A stretch of 64,000 bases of DNA from Guillardia theta CCMP2712 (Eukaryota; Protista; Cryptophyta). The position numbers and the translations under genes were made by a program. The notes below the pieces were generated by a model, which was given only the letters and a program-made list of their open reading frames with translations, did not search any database and was not told where the DNA came from. Shown one piece after another: positions 26,503 through 50,983 of this stretch. How positions within the stretch are numbered: the first letter of the stretch is position 1; each line of letters starts with the position of its first letter. Location: positions 197,781 through 261,780 of the forward strand of contig NW_005434666.1 in the NCBI RefSeq assembly GCF_000315625.1. Direction: 5' to 3'.

Positions 26503-29413
26503 ATGAGCCATGTGCTGAAGCGTCGTGGAATCCTTCCCGTCCACATCCTAGTGAGGACGGCGATCCTGCCCGGACGGCAGAGGAGGCTCATGGGCCCAGG
26601 TAGAAGCTGCATGGAGGATTGATGGGACTGTGTTGCATCGCGTGGTGGCACGAGCTCTTGTCTCGTGGTTCTCATCCTTGTTTCAGCCTTCTCCCACGTC
26701 ACGATGCGCATCCGTGAAACCATCGTCTCTGCCATGGACGACAAGCTTGCCAGTGGAACCGTGGCTTCGGAGCTGGTCTATGGTGTTTTGAAGGCGCTCA
26801 GGTAAGACCTGCCTACTGTGCTCTCGGTACTGAGTTTGTTCTTCAGCCTTGCGTACTCTGCCGGGTTGTGGGTGAGGAAGGTCGCGTACAGGCTGCAACT
26901 GCTGCGGACGCATGTCCTCCCTGTCCCCGTGATCAGGTCAGGCAAGAGGAGGAAGGCAGTGTTAGGATGACGTGGACGTCGCACAAGTGTCGGGAACGTG
27001 ACGGTGGGAGGGAGCGGGAAGACACCGATGTGCGTTTACCTTGCGAAGCTGTCGAGGATGGCCAACCTGAGGTTGGACAGGCTGAAGGGGGAGGAGTGGA
27101 CTGAGGACTTGTAGGCCTCTGGTGCTGACGAGAGGATACGGCGAAGACGAAGATAAGATGATGATGCAACTGTGAGTGAAGAGAACGAAGATGAACGGGA
27201 TTTGGTTGGTGGGATGTTTGTGGTCGTGGGGGAAGGAGCGGAGGAGGGGGAGAAAGGAGAAGTGAGGCAAAAGAGAAGGGGAGCAAGGGGAGCAAGAGAG
27301 AGGGGGAGGAGAAGAGGGAGCGGGAGGGACTTGAGATAGATTTGATGAATGGAATGCAGATTGGACGGCGTTGCTGGAGTAGGGTCGGGTGCAAGGCGAT
27401 ACGAGATAGGAAGTCACATGTTGAATAACGAAGATGATCAGGTTCTTTCAATGATGCTTCATCAGCCTGATATCCTGTTATGCTTCCATCATTTTTAAAT
27501 GTCTTCATCCTTCACTTCTTACCAGTTGTCTGCTGTTACTCATGCTTGACTTGCTACATTCCTGGAAGAGATTATGCTCTCATTGTGTTTGTCAACCTCA
27601 TTGAATGCGTCTTCGTCAGTTACAAACTCTGGATTGCAAGTACAAGCATCTCCCCAACGGAACCATGGAGGTCAGGATCGATTGCTTGACGATTAAACTC
27701 ATCTCGATCACCAACCGTTTGCGAAGACGTCGGCTAACCATGGCCTCAACTACGACCTGATCATCTTGGATGACGGCTTGCAGCACTCACGAATCCTGCG
27801 TGACTTCCACGTGGTGAGACCACAAGCCCATGCTAACGATGACACATCACATCTGGACTTCACATCTGACACGTCTGATCGCTAGGTTATGATCAATTGC
27901 CTGGATCCTCCCACCCAGCACAAGCACCTCCTCCCAAGGTGAACTCATCGTTGAATGTGTTTCCGCGACTTCTCTGACCTGTTGGAGAAGAGGGAGGCTG
28001 AGGGAACCGTTGTGCGATGCGATCAAGCTCGCCGATGTGATCGTTGTGCACAATGCTGACAAAGTGAGCGAGAGGAAAGTGCAAGAGGTAGAAGACGACG
28101 TTCGGAGTCTGGCCGTCAACTCCCGCGGAAAGAGTTTCAATGTGCGCACAGCAAGCGGACTTTGCGAGATGCCGATGTCTGAAGAGAGTTGCAGACGACT
28201 GAGAGGAAGATGCATCTGACGGTGAGGTCGCACTTCTCTCCATCGCGGATGACGCGGCTGACGTGCAAGTAAGTGTAGGGGAACATTCTTATGTGAGAGT
28301 TGTGAGGTACAAGTTGCAGGGGAGATCAGGATAGGGAGATGCCAAGGTACTTCCAACAACTACGATAGTCCTCAAAGGAGTTTGAAGTGGTTTTGACTTT
28401 GGTGTCAGAAGACAAGAGCTAGAGCTGTCGAATTGTGCTGTTTATTGCTTTGCCGGGATAGCTAACCCAGAAGGTTGTGCGTCTTTCTGATTTGTTTAGA
28501 GAACACCAATAAGGAATGTACAATTATTATCACACCTTGATGTTCGAAACATTCTGAATGAGCAATGCTCGTGCATTAGATCATATAGTGTTGATTTTTG
28601 AGTGCTGACTGCTGACTTGTTATCTTTTCTCTCCTGTCATGATGCATGTGTTTGTGTTCCTCACTAATCGTGACTCTGTTTCTTCACCTGCAGGATTTTT
28701 CCAATCGGTGAAGAGTTTATCACCTGCCCTTTACCTGGGAGGTAAAAAATTCGCAAATTCTTGAGGAGGCGATTTTACATGTCTCTCAACAGAAACTTCT
28801 TTTCCTGATCATCACAAGTACTGTTTAAGGTGAGATTTGCAGTGTCAGGCAGAGTATGAATGCTGCAGAGCTTTTAAGATCTGTATCTTCCATGCTTGAC
28901 AAGTCCCATATCAGAGATCTTGAGGACATCACACAAGCTGCCAAGAGGGAAAATCAAGAGATTGTTTGTGTTCTTATGTTGTCTTTCGTTGTATCTCACG
29001 TCTTTCTACCAGCATGAAGATCGTCTCCCCATAGTGATCATCACGACGGAAAAGGCAACATATCAGCTCGCGTTGCTTGCCTTGAACGTGGACACAGGAC
29101 GTGGCAAGGAGCGGAGAGATGATAGAAACTTTCTTCAACCAGCAGCAAGTGGAGGTAGCAAGAGGGCATGGAGGGAGTGAGATAGCAAACCCCTGGAGCA
29201 GGTTTGCATTCTAGGAGGAGACCTCGTCCTTCACGGCGATCCATGTGAGTTTCAGATGCAACGAGCACCTGTTGCATGGTAGTTGCGGCAGTTGACAGAG
29301 ATGGAGTGGGAAAGCATGAACATGGCAATCACAAAGAATGCAAAAGTTGTTGTCTACGTGCGCGTAAGTGGGAGGCAGGCTTGTGTAATCATGATCATGT
29401 TTTGTGCTGTTGA
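26503..29413 (+). CDS. lpxK: Tetraacyldisaccharide 4'-kinase (lipid A 4'-kinase), multi-exon; 3' end approximate
   Basis: Spliced motifs LPVPVISVGNVTVGGSGKTP (P-loop), VLTRGYG, LIILDDGLQH (Walker B), HLLPRGRLREP, ADVIVV, AFAGIANP, FPDHHKY and IITTEKD occur in canonical LpxK order. Confidence 0.92.
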
Positions 29414-29641
29414 CTTGTCAAGGAGACGAAAGCGCTTGTCCACCTTAGGATCCTCCTCGACGTCACTTGTGACATGTTCTTGCAGCGCAACTTGTCGAGC
29501 TATGCCTACTGCCAAGCGCCCTGCGGCGCATGTTGACATCAAGGCCTTCCAGCTGATCAGCTACTCCTTGCCTCCTCCCTGTTGAGATCCCGTAACCAGC
29601 TTGCTCCTGCTTTTGTCTCCCTGTCTCCCTCGCCCTCTCAC

Positions 29642-30143
29642 TCAGGTCGCGCTCTTGCGTGCACTCTGAATGACTTTCAGCGAGTTGGAAGCGATCCACC
29701 CTGCAAGATGCTGTCACTGTACTCCTTCTCCTCCTCCTCCTCCTCCTCCTTCTCCTTCTGCTCCTCCTCCTCCTCCTCCTCCTTCTCCTCCTCCTCCTCC
29801 GCCACCGCCTCCTCATGTGCAATCACCACCATCCTTTCCCTCCTCCGTCTTCCCCGTCCTCTTTATGCTTTCGTCCTCCTCTCTTGAGTAAATGTGCATC
29901 CCCTCGTGGTAAATTTCTCCTCCTCCCTCTCGACCCGCCCACCTTCCTCCCCCTCCAGCATCACCTAGAGCTGCGATGCGCAGAATACTATTGAGGTAGA
30001 GCTTGGAATGGCGCTGACCATCGGAGTCAGCAAGGAAGAGGAGAAAGTGGAGAAAGAGGAAAAATGGTGAGATGCAGGAGAAACAGGCAGGGAACCTGAA
30101 GGAGCAGAAGAGAAGGAGAAAGAGGAGCAGGAGCGGGAGAAAG

Positions 30144-30175
<32 letters not shown>

Positions 30176-31849
30176 AACAACTGGCAGGTCGTGTACTGGA
30201 GTGCAAGACGAGTTGATCTCAACCTTAATGCGCCTGACGTGAGAGGTGGCGGTGGAAACGATCATCTCCCGCAACGGTTTGACATTGGTGTCCATCTACA
30301 ACAGAGTATGAGCTGTCAGGGGAAGAGGAAGGGAACAGAGACGTGGCAAAAAACTCGAGCACCCTCTTAGGAACAGGAGGGAGGCAGAGGAGGTGGGAGG
30401 AGGAGGGGCAGGCCGAAGGAGCAAAGGATCGGGAGAGAGCAGGATTGGAATCACCTGAGAGATGAAGCGAGTGATGTGCTGGATCGTCGCGCCGACGCCG
30501 GCATCCTTGGAGGAGGAGCATCAGCAGCAGCAAGAGGAGGAGGAGCGTCCTTGTACCTCAGGCCAGAGGCCGTAAGCCTTCAGGTTGACGTCCGACCGCT
30601 CTGACTCGACGTAACTGCAAGGCAGGTGAGCTTCGATAGGAGGAAGCCAAGGAGCGATGAGGGATGTGACTGAGTGAAACGAGAGGATTGAGGAGGTGAT
30701 GGGGAGAATTCAACATGTTGAAGATGGCGCAAATTTAGCGGAGGGCAGGTGTAAGAATGGAAGGAGCATGTAAGAGATGGAGGGGGAGAAGGAGGGGGTA
30801 TCGAAGTCCACAAAAGGAAGGGGAGGGGTAGGTTGAGAGCTGCCCACGTCTTCAGATCCATGCAAGCAATGTGGACAAGCAGCTTCGCTATGGCAACCTT
30901 GACGAAATGCGGGATGGGCCCTGCAGGGAGAAAGCGAGTGAGACGAGGAAAGAGAAGATAGCTCCTCACCCGAGATGTCGGCAGAGACTGTAAAGAACAC
31001 TTGAGTAGAGTTGGAGGATATCTCTTTAAGAGTATATTCGCCCTGTAAAAGACAAAATCAGACAAGTCGAGAGAAAGACAGCGGACGGCAGAGCAGAGGA
31101 GAGAGCAGAGCAGAGCACAAGGCTGAATGTGCATCTCATGCGCAACAGCAATGAGGCAGCAAGCTCGATTGCGGGTTCCTCCTCCTCACCCTCAGCATCT
31201 TGATCAGCCTGGTCGAGTGGACGTTGCGGAAAGCAACACGAGAAGGAGCGTTCATTGCCCAGTACCTGACATGAAGTGTGACCACAAATGTCCTCCTACC
31301 TCAAACAGCCTCACATGGAGAAGTAGAATTTGAGGCCGAAACACCCCGTGATGTACTGGATCTCCCAGAATGTCGGGGAGCTTTGCTTGATCACCATGTC
31401 TTTGATCCCATCCCCCGACCAATCGTTGTAGTGCTTGAAGTCTGTAATGACCTTGTAGATCTTCTTGATGGGCGCGTTGATCTGTCCCATTCACAACTCA
31501 GTCCCGCTAGCATCAGCGGCTGCTCTCAGCAGCCTTGAGGTCAGTCGCAGGTCACCGTGATAGTTCGCTCCATGCGCCCTATCCTAGATTTCGTCCGTTT
31601 CCCGTCGTGATTCTCCTCCCCGTGCTGGTGGGTAAAGCAGGATCCGAAGCACTGGAATACCGAGTCCAACCAGCCCCCCCCTCGCAGCCGCAAAGTCTGC
31701 GCCGTCATGAGCCGAGAAGCCAATCTGCACGGGACATTAGAGGACATAAAAGGATTTTGGACGGCAATAGCTCACCTCTCAGAGTCGCAGCACCCAACCT
31801 GCACGCACAACAGGGCCAGGGCGAAGAGAGCGAAATACTGCCTCGCCAT
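29642..31849 (-). CDS. Signal peptide + LRLRGG leader + START/SRPBCC (polyketide cyclase/Coq10-like) domain protein with a C-terminal hydrophobic helix
   Basis: Spliced: MARQYFALFALALLCVQVGCCDSERLASRLMTAQTLRLRGGGWLDSVFQCFGSCF...ERTITINAPIKKIYKVITDFKHYNDW...GEYTLKEISSNSTQVFFTVSADISGPIPHFVKVAIAKLL...LRIAALGWIASNSLKVIQSARKSAT*. Confidence 0.8.
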
Positions 31850-32214
31850 CGTGCCACCACGTTCTATGTCGAGCAACCTGTTACTCTCCCCTATCGTTCA
31901 TCCTTCTCTCCGCTTTCTTCACCTCGTCGGGGGGGCAGCAAGCTGTTCACGGCCCACGGGGAAGCTCCATCTAGCGATCCGCCTGCTGCTCAGCGGGGCA
32001 TAAAAATGGTCAAAATCAGCGCCATGGCTCATTTTGCACAACAATCTTCATGCGCATCCTTGATCTATCATCATATCCTTGTCTGCCTTCTCCTGTCTGC
32101 CCTCTCCCCCTCCCCATCTCTCAGCCCCCAGCCCCTCGCCTGGTTGCTCCCCATGCTGTGCATTCCGCCGGTTCAATCTTTCGTTACAGATGGCTACAAA
32201 AAACCGTTACTTCA

Positions 32215-32530
32215 TGGGGCCGGGCCGGGCCGCCCGGCCCGGCCGGGGCGGGGCCGTGTACTTCCGCCGGGTCCGATCCGACACGGTGGAGTCACACCGT
32301 AAGACGATGGCACGCCGCGGTGAGTCGGGCCGCCGTGGCGCAGTCTAAGCTCAGTGGGACTCGCAGGCTCTGCCGACGGTGACTCAGTGACTCGCCGCAT
32401 CTAAGGCTCAGGCTCAGCCCCGACGGTGCGAGCCTGTCTACTCGCGCCCGATCCGATGATCAACGGTCACTAGCAGCGCTGTAAAGTGCTGGGGCCACTG
32501 CCGCCGCGCCGAGGTGGGGCGTGCCACTCA
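32215..32530. promoter_or_regulatory. GC-rich palindromic island upstream of the START-domain gene
   Basis: ggggccgggccgggccgcccggcccggccggggcggggcc plus GACTCAG/CTCAG stutters. Similar islands precede several other gene starts. The regulatory role is inferred. Confidence 0.4.
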
Positions 32531-33895
32531 ATTTCATGGCCCATGCCACAAACGATTCACGGCGGAAAAACTGTACTCACTCCACTGATCGGACCTCTAC
32601 AGGCTAAGCGGTACGATGCACGGGCCCATTTCGAGAGACGGATGGCACCAGGAATATCATATAAAGGATCCGAATGGGCCCGCGCCACTACCACCCACCC
32701 AATACAAAAGACTACCCTACCTTTCAAGAGAAGAGTTATGATCTGAATCAAGAATACCCCGAAAATCGTGAGTATTTACCCGTCGTTTGCCCCAAGTACC
32801 CACCCCCCTTTATCAAGCTTTCCTCCTGCTACCCCCACCACAGCAGTTCGCTCACATAGAAGGGACCGGTCACGCACGAGAAAACCCTCTTTTGATACTT
32901 TACTATAGAACGAACTGGAGGGAGGAAGGCGAAAACATTCCTTTTCGAGCAATTCGCACTTGCAAGGCCCCCCGGGGGGGTGTTTGCGAATCGGGTATGC
33001 ATCCCTACCTGCCAGTATCAATCTTCTTCTATAGGCAATGACCGGTATCTTCATGACCCCCACCCCCCCAGTTTACCCTTTACCTGGCCTCCGATTTAAT
33101 AAATAAATCCCGCGCCCCCATTTATTTTATCACTCCTTTACAAGTACTGCATCGTCACCTACCCCCACCACCTTCGTTGCCCCCACCCCTACCTGATGGA
33201 AATTCAAATGCTCAATCGATTCATGTGGTACTCTAGACCCCTCCTTGAGAGCTTCAATTTAGGGGTCCATGGGTGGTACTTGCAGTTTTGGTACCCGTGG
33301 AAGGATCTCAGACCAACCCTTCACCCACAATCATGTAGGGGATTTACTACCCTTACCCCCTTTTTTAGCCACCCCTACCCCCATTCGCTGACAACGTCCC
33401 CCATCCCCCCGTTCGAACGAGCGAACATGTGAACGATTTGTTCGGGAGAAACGACGGAGCAAAACATGGGAGGAGAGAGGAGGAGGAGGCAGCGAGATGG
33501 AGGAAGGAACTGAGCAAAGGTTTTATGTCAAAGAAGCACGACCAGAACTTGAAAGGCAGTCTGTGAGTGAGGAGAATTGCTACCGCCATGTTAGAGGGTG
33601 GTAAGAATAGCATAAGATGTGATGAATGCCGTATGAAGCTGGATTGTAGAATGAAGTCAGAAGTAGGTGGGGTTAAAAGCGATTGAGGAGAGGGTCATTG
33701 TTTGTGGTCTTACTTCAAGACCGCCTTTCCCTTTATCAGTAATAAGCCTGCTCTTCTGATAAGATGTAGCTGGACATAACATTCCTCTTCACATCAAATA
33801 ATTGTTTTCCATCGTTTTAACCAGCAGACATCAGCGTCTGACACAGCTTCAGTCGTTTTCGCAACCTGACGCAAGCGTCATTGTGCAGATCTCGC

Positions 33896-48904: not shown

Positions 48905-50983
48905 ATGCCTTCTCCCCCCCTCAGACCCTCCTCCGCCTCTTCCTCCGCCTCCTCCTCCGCCTCCTTCCCTGCTCTCCTCCGTACCATGTCCCAGTCCTCC
49001 CTCACTGCCAAGCTCCTCCGCAAGCTCCTCCGTCATGATCCTGCCTCCCACGCTCGCCGTCGTCCGACCCCTTCCTCACCCGCCATGCAGCCCGATTATC
49101 CCAGCGACGTCGTCAAGCACCTCTGTGATGCCATCGGCTCTATGACGGGTCACTACGCCTCGCTCTCGCGGCGCGCTGCCAAGCAGAGCAAGTCCATCGT
49201 CGCCATGGCTGATGCCGTCGCTCAGTCCAACATGGCGGTCTGTGCCATGGTCGCCGAGCTCGCGGAGATAGCGAGCGGTCTCTCAGACGTCTGCCAGGCC
49301 GTCATGGCTCAGCAGGAGCAGGTGCTGGTGCTGCTGCAGGCCCAGCCTCTCCCGCCGCATGCCGTCTCCTACAAGGACGTCAAGATCAAACAGGACCTCT
49401 ATCCCGCTCACTCCCTCCCGCCCGACGAGGCACACGCCGCTGTCACGCTGCCACACCACAGCGACGTCAAGCCCTGCTCTAGCCTCCGTGTCGAGCCGGC
49501 CATGCTGTCTCCTGCTCCCTGCCCTCCAGTCGAGCCCGCCGCGGCCTTGCATGAAGCAACGACATGCGTCTCCCCGACTGCTCTGGCCAAGACAGACGAG
49601 AGGATCGAGCTCGACGAGCCGCTGGCGGATCAGCGGGAGCGAGGAGGGCCCGCCAGCTCGAAGCGCGAGGGCGCGGCCTCGAGCTTCGGCTTCGCCTCTA
49701 CCGTCGCCGTGTATCACCCGTTCCGAGGGAATCGGACTGAAATCAAGTACGTCGACTGGTTCGCCGTCAGAGGGCGCGTCGCCGCCCTGTGCGACGGAGG
49801 ACGGCACGGCCGGCTGTCGGAGCGGCTTGCCCGGAAGATGGCTGCTGCCTTCGTCTCTATGAGCCCGCCTTCTGAGGGCCCGTACCTGGCCGAGGACAGG
49901 TACTCGCAAGCCATCGACCAGACCAAGGCGGAGCTCAAGGAGAGTGACGCCTCGATCAAGGAGAGCATGAGGTCAGCGTCTTTCTTGGGGCTCGAGCTCT
50001 GCCCAGAGCATAGCAGCGGCAATGTCCAGGTACGCGCGCTGGTGATCGGGAGCCCCCGCTGGGCCGTCCTGTCCTACAACCAAGACGAGTCGAGGTCAGA
50101 ACACGCCCCCAATGCGAGCATGTCCCTGCTTCTGACTGACCGGCCGTGTGGCAGCTTCGAGTGTCGCCACCTCTCCGAGCCCTGCTCGGATGTCACAGGC
50201 TCCCGCGGGCTGGCGGCCCGGCCGTCCGCTCTCAGCATCGAGGCGCGGGACGGGGACATCCTTGTCATCGGCAGCGACGGCTTCTGGCGCAACGTCTTCT
50301 TGCCGGGGAGCGGGGGCGGCGAGTCGAAGCTGCGGTGTAGCCTGGTGGAGAGTGCGGGCAAGGCGCTCAAGTACGTCTCTACCCAGAGCACTCCAGGACA
50401 GGACTGGTCCCAGTGCACCAAGTTTGTTGAGCAGCTCGGCAAGGACTTGTACGGGATCGCCATGGGAAACATGAGCAATGTCAAGGGCTATGAGGACGAC
50501 ATGACCGTCCTTGTGACGCGGGTGAAGAGAGGAGAGGCCGGCGTCGAGCTTGACGCGAGCATCGACGCAAGACCGATGCTGACCGGCGGGTACTACGTCG
50601 TCAGGGAGCCGCCACTCAGCAGCAGGTCCGAGGAGCGTCCGGCGCCAGCGCCGGTCTCTCACAAGGAGCCTCAAGAACTCGGAGGCAGCTCAGTCAGGGC
50701 CGAAGGACCCGGAGGTCGCATCGTGTCGATGAGCCAGGCGGCTTGCGCTGATTGTCCTGGGCCGGCACCAGGAGCGCGGCGCTTTGGCGGCGGCGCCAAG
50801 CGGCAGCAGCCTGATGAGTCCGCCGCTGACAGCCACGGTGAGCCCCGGGAACAGCCCCGGAAGGTCGGCCCCGGAGCCGGGTTGCAATTTGGAGCAAAGA
50901 AGCCTGTGAGTACATTGTGTGCGGGGCTCAGAAACTGGACCGTCCGAGGCTTGAGGGACCCGTGCACTCAAGACTCTCAGTAG
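48905..50983 (+). CDS. Divergent PP2C/PPM (PTC7-like) phosphatase-domain protein, copy 1
   Basis: ALCDGG, GDILVIGSDGFWRNV and YEDDMTVLV match PPM metal-binding motifs. There is an N-terminal helical/coiled region, a probable in-frame intron at 50095-50154, and a possible donor near 50905, so the true C-terminus is uncertain. Confidence 0.75.
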   Translation: MPSPPLRPSSASSSASSSASFPALLRTMSQSSLTAKLLRKLLRHDPASHARRRPTPSSPAMQPDYPSDVVKHLCDAIGSMTGHYASLSRRAAKQSKSIVAMADAVAQSNMAVCAMVAELAEIASGLSDVCQAVMAQQEQVLVLLQAQPLPPHAVSYKDVKIKQDLYPAHSLPPDEAHAAVTLPHHSDVKPCSSLRVEPAMLSPAPCPPVEPAAALHEATTCVSPTALAKTDERIELDEPLADQRERGGPASSKREGAASSFGFASTVAVYHPFRGNRTEIKYVDWFAVRGRVAALCDGGRHGRLSERLARKMAAAFVSMSPPSEGPYLAEDRYSQAIDQTKAELKESDASIKESMRSASFLGLELCPEHSSGNVQVRALVIGSPRWAVLSYNQDESRSEHAPNASMSLLLTDRPCGSFECRHLSEPCSDVTGSRGLAARPSALSIEARDGDILVIGSDGFWRNVFLPGSGGGESKLRCSLVESAGKALKYVSTQSTPGQDWSQCTKFVEQLGKDLYGIAMGNMSNVKGYEDDMTVLVTRVKRGEAGVELDASIDARPMLTGGYYVVREPPLSSRSEERPAPAPVSHKEPQELGGSSVRAEGPGGRIVSMSQAACADCPGPAPGARRFGGGAKRQQPDESAADSHGEPREQPRKVGPGAGLQFGAKKPVSTLCAGLRNWTVRGLRDPCTQDSQ

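Follow-up and report, generated by a model that had tools for sequence, protein, structure and literature searches.

The window analysed here is a stretch of 64,000 nucleotides from Guillardia theta CCMP2712 (contig NW_005434666.1, positions 197,781 to 261,780 of the forward strand), which carries on its minus strand the gene GUITHDRAFT_161198. The gene encodes a START-like protein whose N-terminus, in the translation of the spliced transcript, reads MARQYFALFALALLCVQVGCC-DSERLASRLMTAQT-LRLRGG-GWLDSVFQCFGSCF. LRLRGG is the sequence of the last six residues of ubiquitin, and in this protein it stands between a variable leader and a well-conserved remainder. The features of the gene are the following:

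29486 to 32096, minus strand: the whole transcribed gene, with a 5' untranslated region (5'UTR) exon and 11 coding exons; joints seen in transcript contigs of runs X1, X2 and X8.
31923 to 32096, minus strand: the 5'UTR exon, containing an in-frame stop and out-of-frame upstream ATGs.
31787 to 31849, minus strand: signal-peptide-like N-terminus, residues 1–21, with a basic n-region MAR, a hydrophobic core and a c-region VGCC.
31725 to 31775, minus strand: 51-nucleotide GT-AG intron, ends GTGAGC...GTGCAG, joint 31724/31776 in contigs of X1, X2 and X8.
31694 to 31786, minus strand: variable linker, residues 22–35 (DSERLASRLMTAQT), disordered and split by the 51-nucleotide intron.
31676 to 31693, minus strand: LRLRGG, residues 36–41, the ubiquitin-tail motif with a proposed cleavage site after Gly41.
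31634 to 31675, minus strand: hydrophobic Cys cluster, residues 42–55 (GWLDSVFQCFGSCF), a candidate S-acylation or membrane-binding segment.
31571 to 31603, minus strand: conserved polybasic stretch KRTKSRIGRME, residues 66–76, in which a K/R-rich run is followed by x-[IV]-G-[RK] across orthologues.
30575 to 31585, minus strand: SRPBCC/START-like (Polyketide_cyc2) domain, residues 72–224, exons 2–7, from Pfam, AlphaFold2 (AF2) and Foldseek.
29642 to 30502, minus strand: C-terminal helical amphipathic extension, residues 232–306 and the stop, exons 8–11.

Transcript evidence was taken from the assembled contigs of runs X1, X2 and X8, which belong to three studies, mapped on 29000–32600. The coding sequence runs from the ATG at 31849 to 29642, with exon 1 at 31776–31863 and exon 2 at 31556–31724. 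In the contigs a 59-nucleotide GT-AG intron (31864–31922) separates the 5'UTR exon from exon 1, and the 51-nucleotide intron, which the first-pass annotation had proposed from the genomic letters, is borne out by joints from all three studies; nine more introns follow as far as exon 11 (29486–29699), with identical joints in the three runs. Once all joints are spliced, a 306-residue open reading frame (ORF) results that is identical, residue for residue, to P0177, the GUITHDRAFT_161198 protein of G. theta CCMP2712. The N-terminal sequence read earlier matches both exactly, and the public NCBI gene model agrees with the transcripts. The ATG at 31849 is the first one in frame, as the reading frame is closed by a stop codon further up, in the 5'UTR exon. 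An alternative start within the 51-nucleotide intron (the MSSNVPC... ORF, 31541–31747) was considered and is unsupported, every transcript contig being spliced. Between 31864 and 32096 the 5'UTR holds several out-of-frame upstream ATGs, and one upstream ORF runs into the main start codon. The X1 contig bears 34 extra unmatched letters past 32096, which may mean a further upstream exon.

The family of this protein was recovered by an exhaustive HMMER search with the 56-residue exon 3 as query, and its orthologues include Hanusia phi P0151, the transcript L003 and the environmental sequences P0152, P0159, P0133, P0026, P0058, P0065, P0031 and P0056. All 11 orthologues with a readable N-terminal region carry the motif as [LM]-x-L-[RA]-G-G, with L(−4), G(−2) and G(−1) invariant; this pattern, exact as LRLRGG in G. 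theta, is the one looked for in LxGG deubiquitinase-type sites. When the 11 sequences are anchored on the motif, the entropies of its six columns are 0.4, 0.9, 0, 0.4, 0 and 0 bits, whereas the 14 columns upstream reach 1.7–3.3 bits against a ceiling of 3.46 for 11 sequences, and the linker has no alignable counterpart among the orthologues. In the eight orthologues whose N-terminus is hydrophobic, the motif begins anywhere from residue 36 to residue 113. Its distance to the domain is 69 residues in P0026 and 40–51 in the other ten. The leaders (residues 2–35) of G. theta and Hanusia share about 47% identity by hand count, and the remainder of the two proteins about 86%. The conservation described here was established within this SRPBCC family.

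A chance origin of the hexamer in the linker was the first reading to be weighed. With typical residue frequencies assumed, about 1.4 LRLRGG would be expected in a proteome of 10^7 residues, which is the point in favour of chance, and 0.075 would be expected in the six-frame translation of the whole window. Since the motif is kept in all 11 orthologues while the leader beside it cannot be aligned, this explanation is refuted and retains hardly any probability. The presence of LRLRGG behind the signal peptide, to which the first-pass annotation had drawn attention, is thus a real feature of the family. From the comparison of sequences, the motif is a constrained element at the border of a variable leader and a conserved protein. 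The earlier claim that it marks the boundary between leader and mature protein therefore stands, on the entropy contrast and the invariant LxGG, and the deubiquitinase-type cleavage that was attached to it is kept below as a conditional step. In the AF2 model, built from a 12-sequence alignment, the motif lies in a disordered stretch (residues 21–69, predicted local distance difference test score, pLDDT, about 30), so it belongs neither to a ubiquitin fold nor to the domain. Membership of the ubiquitin or ubiquitin-like domains was also rejected, with only 14 residues from the signal peptide to the motif, no AF2 structure there and no Pfam ubiquitin hit.

Other occurrences and other readings of the motif were inspected as well. 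None of the remaining LRGG matches in the window (5641, 14058, 48924, 51736 and 61183) is a leader motif: VRLRGG at 14058 appears to cross the acceptor of a mid-gene intron, and the others fall in acidic repeats or non-coding frames. The segments at 48924 and 51736 on the minus strand, about 2.8 kb apart, are near-identical and acidic (…EEGLRGGEGMVDDGELGDPPIW). On sequence inspection, LRLRGG does not fit Plasmodium export element (PEXEL) or RxLR motifs.

Cluster look-ups identified P0151 as Hanusia phi and P0153 as Rhodomonas lens. The deposited proteins of the Rhodomonas cluster (P0006 and P0153) begin at an internal Met (MMGGDND...), and in the four transcript contigs of the Rhodomonas lens cluster, L003–L006, which are tied to this species through cluster membership and not through the species of the runs, the in-frame ORF starts 79 residues further upstream. 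The extended ORF has a hydrophobic N-terminus, a 31-residue linker, MRLRGG and a Cys cluster. Automatic ORF calls thus hide leaders of this kind. Two profile searches and a single-sequence search gave no non-cryptophyte homologues among the matches listed, nearly all of which were sequences already collected; comparison with the protein atlas gave weak leads only, all below 0.9. The exon-3 peptide (…HYNDWSGDGIKDM…) also matches many long repeat proteins, at a guess MORN-like, over multiple stretches; these matches are spurious for this family, and the total of 234 hits is too high because of them.

In the tree the motif-bearing proteins form one clade (Shimodaira–Hasegawa-like approximate likelihood-ratio test, SH-aLRT, 99), apart from a paralogous SRPBCC subfamily without the motif. 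The environmental paralogues P0108, P0114, P0178, P0197 and P0179 have long Gly/Ala/Val-rich repeats (GAVSGAMGAVSG...) and repeated FGSRR[LI] upstream of the domain, and they end in ...YGLL with no helical tail.

The leader begins with a sequence that had been called a signal peptide, and its basic n-region, hydrophobic core (Kyte-Doolittle mean of 2.63 over 12 residues within residues 1–21), c-region of small residues and AF2 helix at residues 2–20 agree with that description. Two criteria were used for the call, hydrophobicity and the −3/−1 rule. A similar hydrophobic N-terminus is found in every orthologue having a complete 5' end. The linker that follows contains four Arg, the motif being included in the count, and no Lys. 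According to the published rule, a transit-peptide-like part that starts with an aromatic residue directs the protein to the stroma, and otherwise to the periplastid space (PMC4494062). For G. theta a plausible cut, read by eye, is VGCC|D, which would leave the non-aromatic Asp at +1 and, by that rule, would point to the periplastid space over the stroma.

Downstream of the motif there are two to four Cys within 40 residues in all 11 orthologues, amid hydrophobic residues. The first Cys comes 2–10 residues past the motif in ten of them, and in P0026 a Gly-rich spacer of 28 residues intervenes. Spacings vary among orthologues (CxxxC, CxxCC, CxCxxxC, CxCxC), a pattern that speaks for S-acylation or insertion into a membrane and against a metal site. 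The sequence characters expected of S-acylated segments, namely a Cys cluster near a terminus, hydrophobic or basic neighbours and variable spacing, occur in 11 of 11 orthologues, and the polybasic stretch immediately precedes the SRPBCC domain. Palmitoylation of the nearby Cys had been proposed in the first-pass annotation: the cluster proves to be conserved throughout, and a palmitoylation-type anchor at this place is plausible from its sequence. Anchors that combine a lipid with a polybasic stretch typically belong to proteins at cytosolic membrane surfaces, and the periplastid compartment descends from the cytosol of the endosymbiotic red alga. A Cys cluster and a polybasic stretch behind a signal peptide would therefore fit this cytosol-derived compartment.

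The same segment bears on the fuller model proposed at first, in which cleavage after GG would expose G-W-L-D-S, Gly42 would be N-myristoylated and the nearby Cys palmitoylated, so that the protein would hold to the membrane by two lipids. Gly does follow the motif in seven orthologues (with Ala in one, Phe in two and Val in one), four of the 11 pass the PROSITE pattern PS00008, G-{EDRKHPFYW}-x-x-[STAGCN]-{P}, the Cys are mostly close by, and proteins cut by caspases are known to be myristoylated afterwards. Nevertheless, the GWLDSV of G. theta itself fails PS00008, in which Trp is excluded at position 2, and we know of no N-myristoyltransferase in the periplastid space. Because the +1 residue varies, P0026 has its long spacer before the first Cys and few orthologues pass the pattern, an exposed Gly is not a conserved requirement. 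N-myristoylation of the new N-terminus is thus unlikely, and the dual-lipid model as a whole is very unlikely; the myristoylation part of the first-pass annotation is dropped.

A second alternative concerns the destination. The protein might be an ordinary secretory or endoplasmic reticulum (ER) resident, with the motif cut by a protease of the secretory pathway or kept as an intrinsic element of the family, with no role in plastid import. A signal peptide by itself does not specify the plastid, and the motif has been established in one family, most members of which are environmental sequences. Against this, unpaired Cys clusters of variable spacing and polybasic stretches are unusual in lumenal proteins, and there is a paralogous subfamily that has the same domain without the motif. 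We consider a purely secretory protein clearly unlikely.

The lipid-binding fold of START/cyclase type that had been suggested for the remainder of the protein is well supported. Pfam PF10604 matches residues 75–200 of P0177 with 27.4 bits, exactly at the cutoff of 27.4, and is above it in the orthologues P0151 (30.0) and P0026 (28.6). In the AF2 model, residues 72–224 (pLDDT 80–93) form seven strands and a long helix at 191–213, that is, a helix-grip fold. Foldseek matches the domain, with a probability of 1.00, to structures of polyketide aromatase/cyclases (ARO/CYC), the START superfamily, Bet v 1 and PYL proteins. Target TM-scores span 0.65–0.82 overall; for the ARO/CYC and START-superfamily structures, one of the latter being mycobacterial, they are 0.7–0.8, with E values of 1e-10 to 1e-8. 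By model and structural matches together the domain has the helix-grip fold that defines the SRPBCC/START-like superfamily. Membership of COQ10 was rejected, with PF03364 at 21.1 bits, below the cutoff of 23.4, and a hydrophobic signal peptide instead of an amphipathic mitochondrial presequence. The C-terminal extension is modelled as helices at residues 232–304 with pLDDT of 51–67. It shows no clear transmembrane helix in the four orthologues resolved, the best 19-residue Kyte-Doolittle window being below 1.5, and a C-terminal transmembrane anchor is unsupported by these windows.

From these elements we propose the following route. GUITHDRAFT_161198 would be a nucleus-encoded, lipid-binding SRPBCC protein with a tripartite leader formed by the signal peptide (residues 1–21), the short, variable linker (22–35), which resembles a transit peptide, and the L-x-L-R-G-G box (36–41). 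The signal peptide would bring it to the ER lumen around the complex plastid, and the rest of the leader would take it across the periplastid membrane into the periplastid compartment by the symbiont-specific ERAD-like machinery (SELMA), a route derived from ER-associated degradation (ERAD). There, a cysteine peptidase specific for ubiquitin tails (LxGG-type) would cut after Gly41, so that the mature protein would begin with the hydrophobic Cys cluster, followed by the polybasic stretch. Both would hold the lipid-binding domain at a membrane surface, through S-acylation and electrostatic contacts. To the reading that the motif ends a targeting leader, probably a periplastid one, and marks a ubiquitin-tail-type cleavage site after Gly41 in a protein that is S-acylated, we assign a probability of about 0.5.

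Several points weigh against it. Conservation alone cannot separate a cut site from a recognition motif that stays uncut. There is no ubiquitin body upstream of the motif, though most deubiquitinases require the folded body of ubiquitin, and the linker offers no lysine for the ubiquitination of the preprotein that the SELMA model supposes. The orthologues do not follow the +1 rule uniformly, as far as their guessed cut sites show: Phe may stand at this position in P0031 and in Hanusia, and Leu may do so in Rhodomonas. The named genera with the motif are three, and the other eight orthologues are environmental sequences. The raw-read RNA run X16 gave no reads on the gene, the transcript support coming from assembled contigs only, and the literature searches found no paper naming GUITHDRAFT_161198, nor any report of its cleavage, N-terminal peptides, proteomic detection or localisation.

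Some of these points would suit another explanation, in which L-x-L-R-G-G is a recognition or retention signal that remains on the mature protein, being read as a ubiquitin tail by, for example, the Cdc48-Ufd1-Npl4 complex of SELMA or a receptor. Conservation of the motif suits a binding motif equally well, no ubiquitin body would then be needed, and in a leader without lysine a built-in ubiquitin-like tag could replace ubiquitination. On the other hand, the free evolution of the upstream sequence, with its several-fold range of lengths, is what is expected of a leader that is discarded, and scissile bonds of the ubiquitin type are marked by just such a strict GG with a variable residue (here G, A, F or V) behind it. 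An uncut signal is in our opinion unlikely.

The diatom deubiquitinase ptDUP has been reported absent from cryptophytes (PMC12412216, PMC5756292), and the fate of ubiquitinated imports in these algae has been called a conundrum (PMC5756292). Each of the four cryptophyte nucleomorphs sequenced has a gene for a zinc-finger protein that contains a Ufm1-specific-peptidase domain (UfSP/ZUFSP-like) and is described as a putative deubiquitinating enzyme (PMC6559170). We regard this nucleomorph-encoded peptidase, Gt2_270 in PMC6559170, as a candidate for cleavage at the motif, and as a candidate only. A more general proposal is that, in cryptophytes, import leaders of proteins resident in the periplastid space and the nucleomorph end in a cleavage signal copied from the ubiquitin tail, LxLRGG, and that a periplastid ubiquitin-type peptidase, possibly the UfSP/ZUFSP-like one, makes the cut. 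In the present SRPBCC protein this would free an S-acylatable Cys cluster that tethers the domain to one of the inner membranes of the plastid. This generalisation is tentative and may well prove wrong.

If the cleavage-signal reading is true, it would supply the missing periplastid leader peptidase and the first candidate for a lipid carrier in that compartment. A ubiquitin-tail box at the border of leader and mature protein is a concrete site to mutate, both for the question of how leaders are removed and for that of a periplastid deubiquitinase in cryptophytes. Moreover, the motif offers a sequence rule for predicting periplastid proteomes, and the family lets its conservation be traced across three or more named genera of cryptophytes as well as several lineages from the environment. 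A START-like domain tethered to a membrane could also bear on the movement of lipids between the four plastid membranes.

Two observations concern the surroundings of the gene. A GC-rich run at 32217–32256, composed almost entirely of GGCC/GGGCC units, lies shortly before the mapped start of the transcript. At the other side, within 29000–29699, the 3' end of GUITHDRAFT_161198 converges with a plus-strand gene that has plus-strand GT..AG joints at 29152–29200 and 29244–29486; single transcript contigs span both genes, which indicates that their 3' ends abut or overlap.

In comparison with known systems, a bipartite leader of plastid type is of a known kind, and its ubiquitin-tail-like end motif is undescribed in the literature searched. 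The periplastid leaders of cryptophytes and diatoms likewise have a signal peptide followed by a short region rich in Ser, Thr and Arg and poor in acidic residues, with a non-aromatic residue after the likely signal-peptide cut in G. theta (rule in PMC4494062), but the G. theta leader differs in ending with the strictly conserved L-x-L-R-G-G. In the literature searched, no conserved motif at the end of the leader and no leader peptidase are described for periplastid-resident proteins; the searches on LRLRGG and LRGG in periplastid or cryptophyte contexts, Guillardia included, returned nothing relevant, the one hit being LRGGG in Omp85.

The domain can be compared with COQ10 and RatA-type SRPBCC proteins, which is the UniRef name of the G. 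theta protein and its Hanusia orthologue. They share the helix-grip SRPBCC fold, with weak PF03364 hits, whereas the G. theta protein has a signal peptide in place of a mitochondrial presequence and, as extra parts, the Cys cluster, the polybasic stretch and a tail of helices about 80 residues long. Proteins that are N-myristoylated after proteolysis, such as caspase-cleaved BID, resemble the present case in that a Gly from inside the chain would become the N-terminus on cleavage, and differ in that the G. theta sequence departs from the consensus and the Gly is not conserved.

Ubiquitin precursors (polyubiquitin and the ubiquitin-ribosomal fusions), which deubiquitinases process behind LRLRGG, have the identical hexamer and, as natural fusions do, a variable +1 residue. 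In them a folded ubiquitin precedes the motif, whereas in G. theta the signal peptide is followed by 14 disordered residues without a fold, and the downstream piece is the product while the upstream one is the leader. Coronavirus papain-like proteases, which are also deubiquitinases, cut LXGG in unstructured linkers of the polyprotein, and the invariant L(−4), G(−2) and G(−1) of the cryptophyte motif make up the same LxGG in a disordered linker. Cleavage of the ubiquitin-tail type without a ubiquitin body is therefore enzymatically possible. Theirs is a viral system and not a cellular import pathway, and we know of no papain-like LXGG enzyme identified in cryptophytes. Finally, plasmepsin V cuts the Plasmodium PEXEL (RxLxE/Q/D) in the ER. 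Motif, protease class and destination are different there, yet the architecture of a signal peptide, a variable spacer and a short conserved motif is shared, and cleavage of PEXEL licenses passage over one more membrane.

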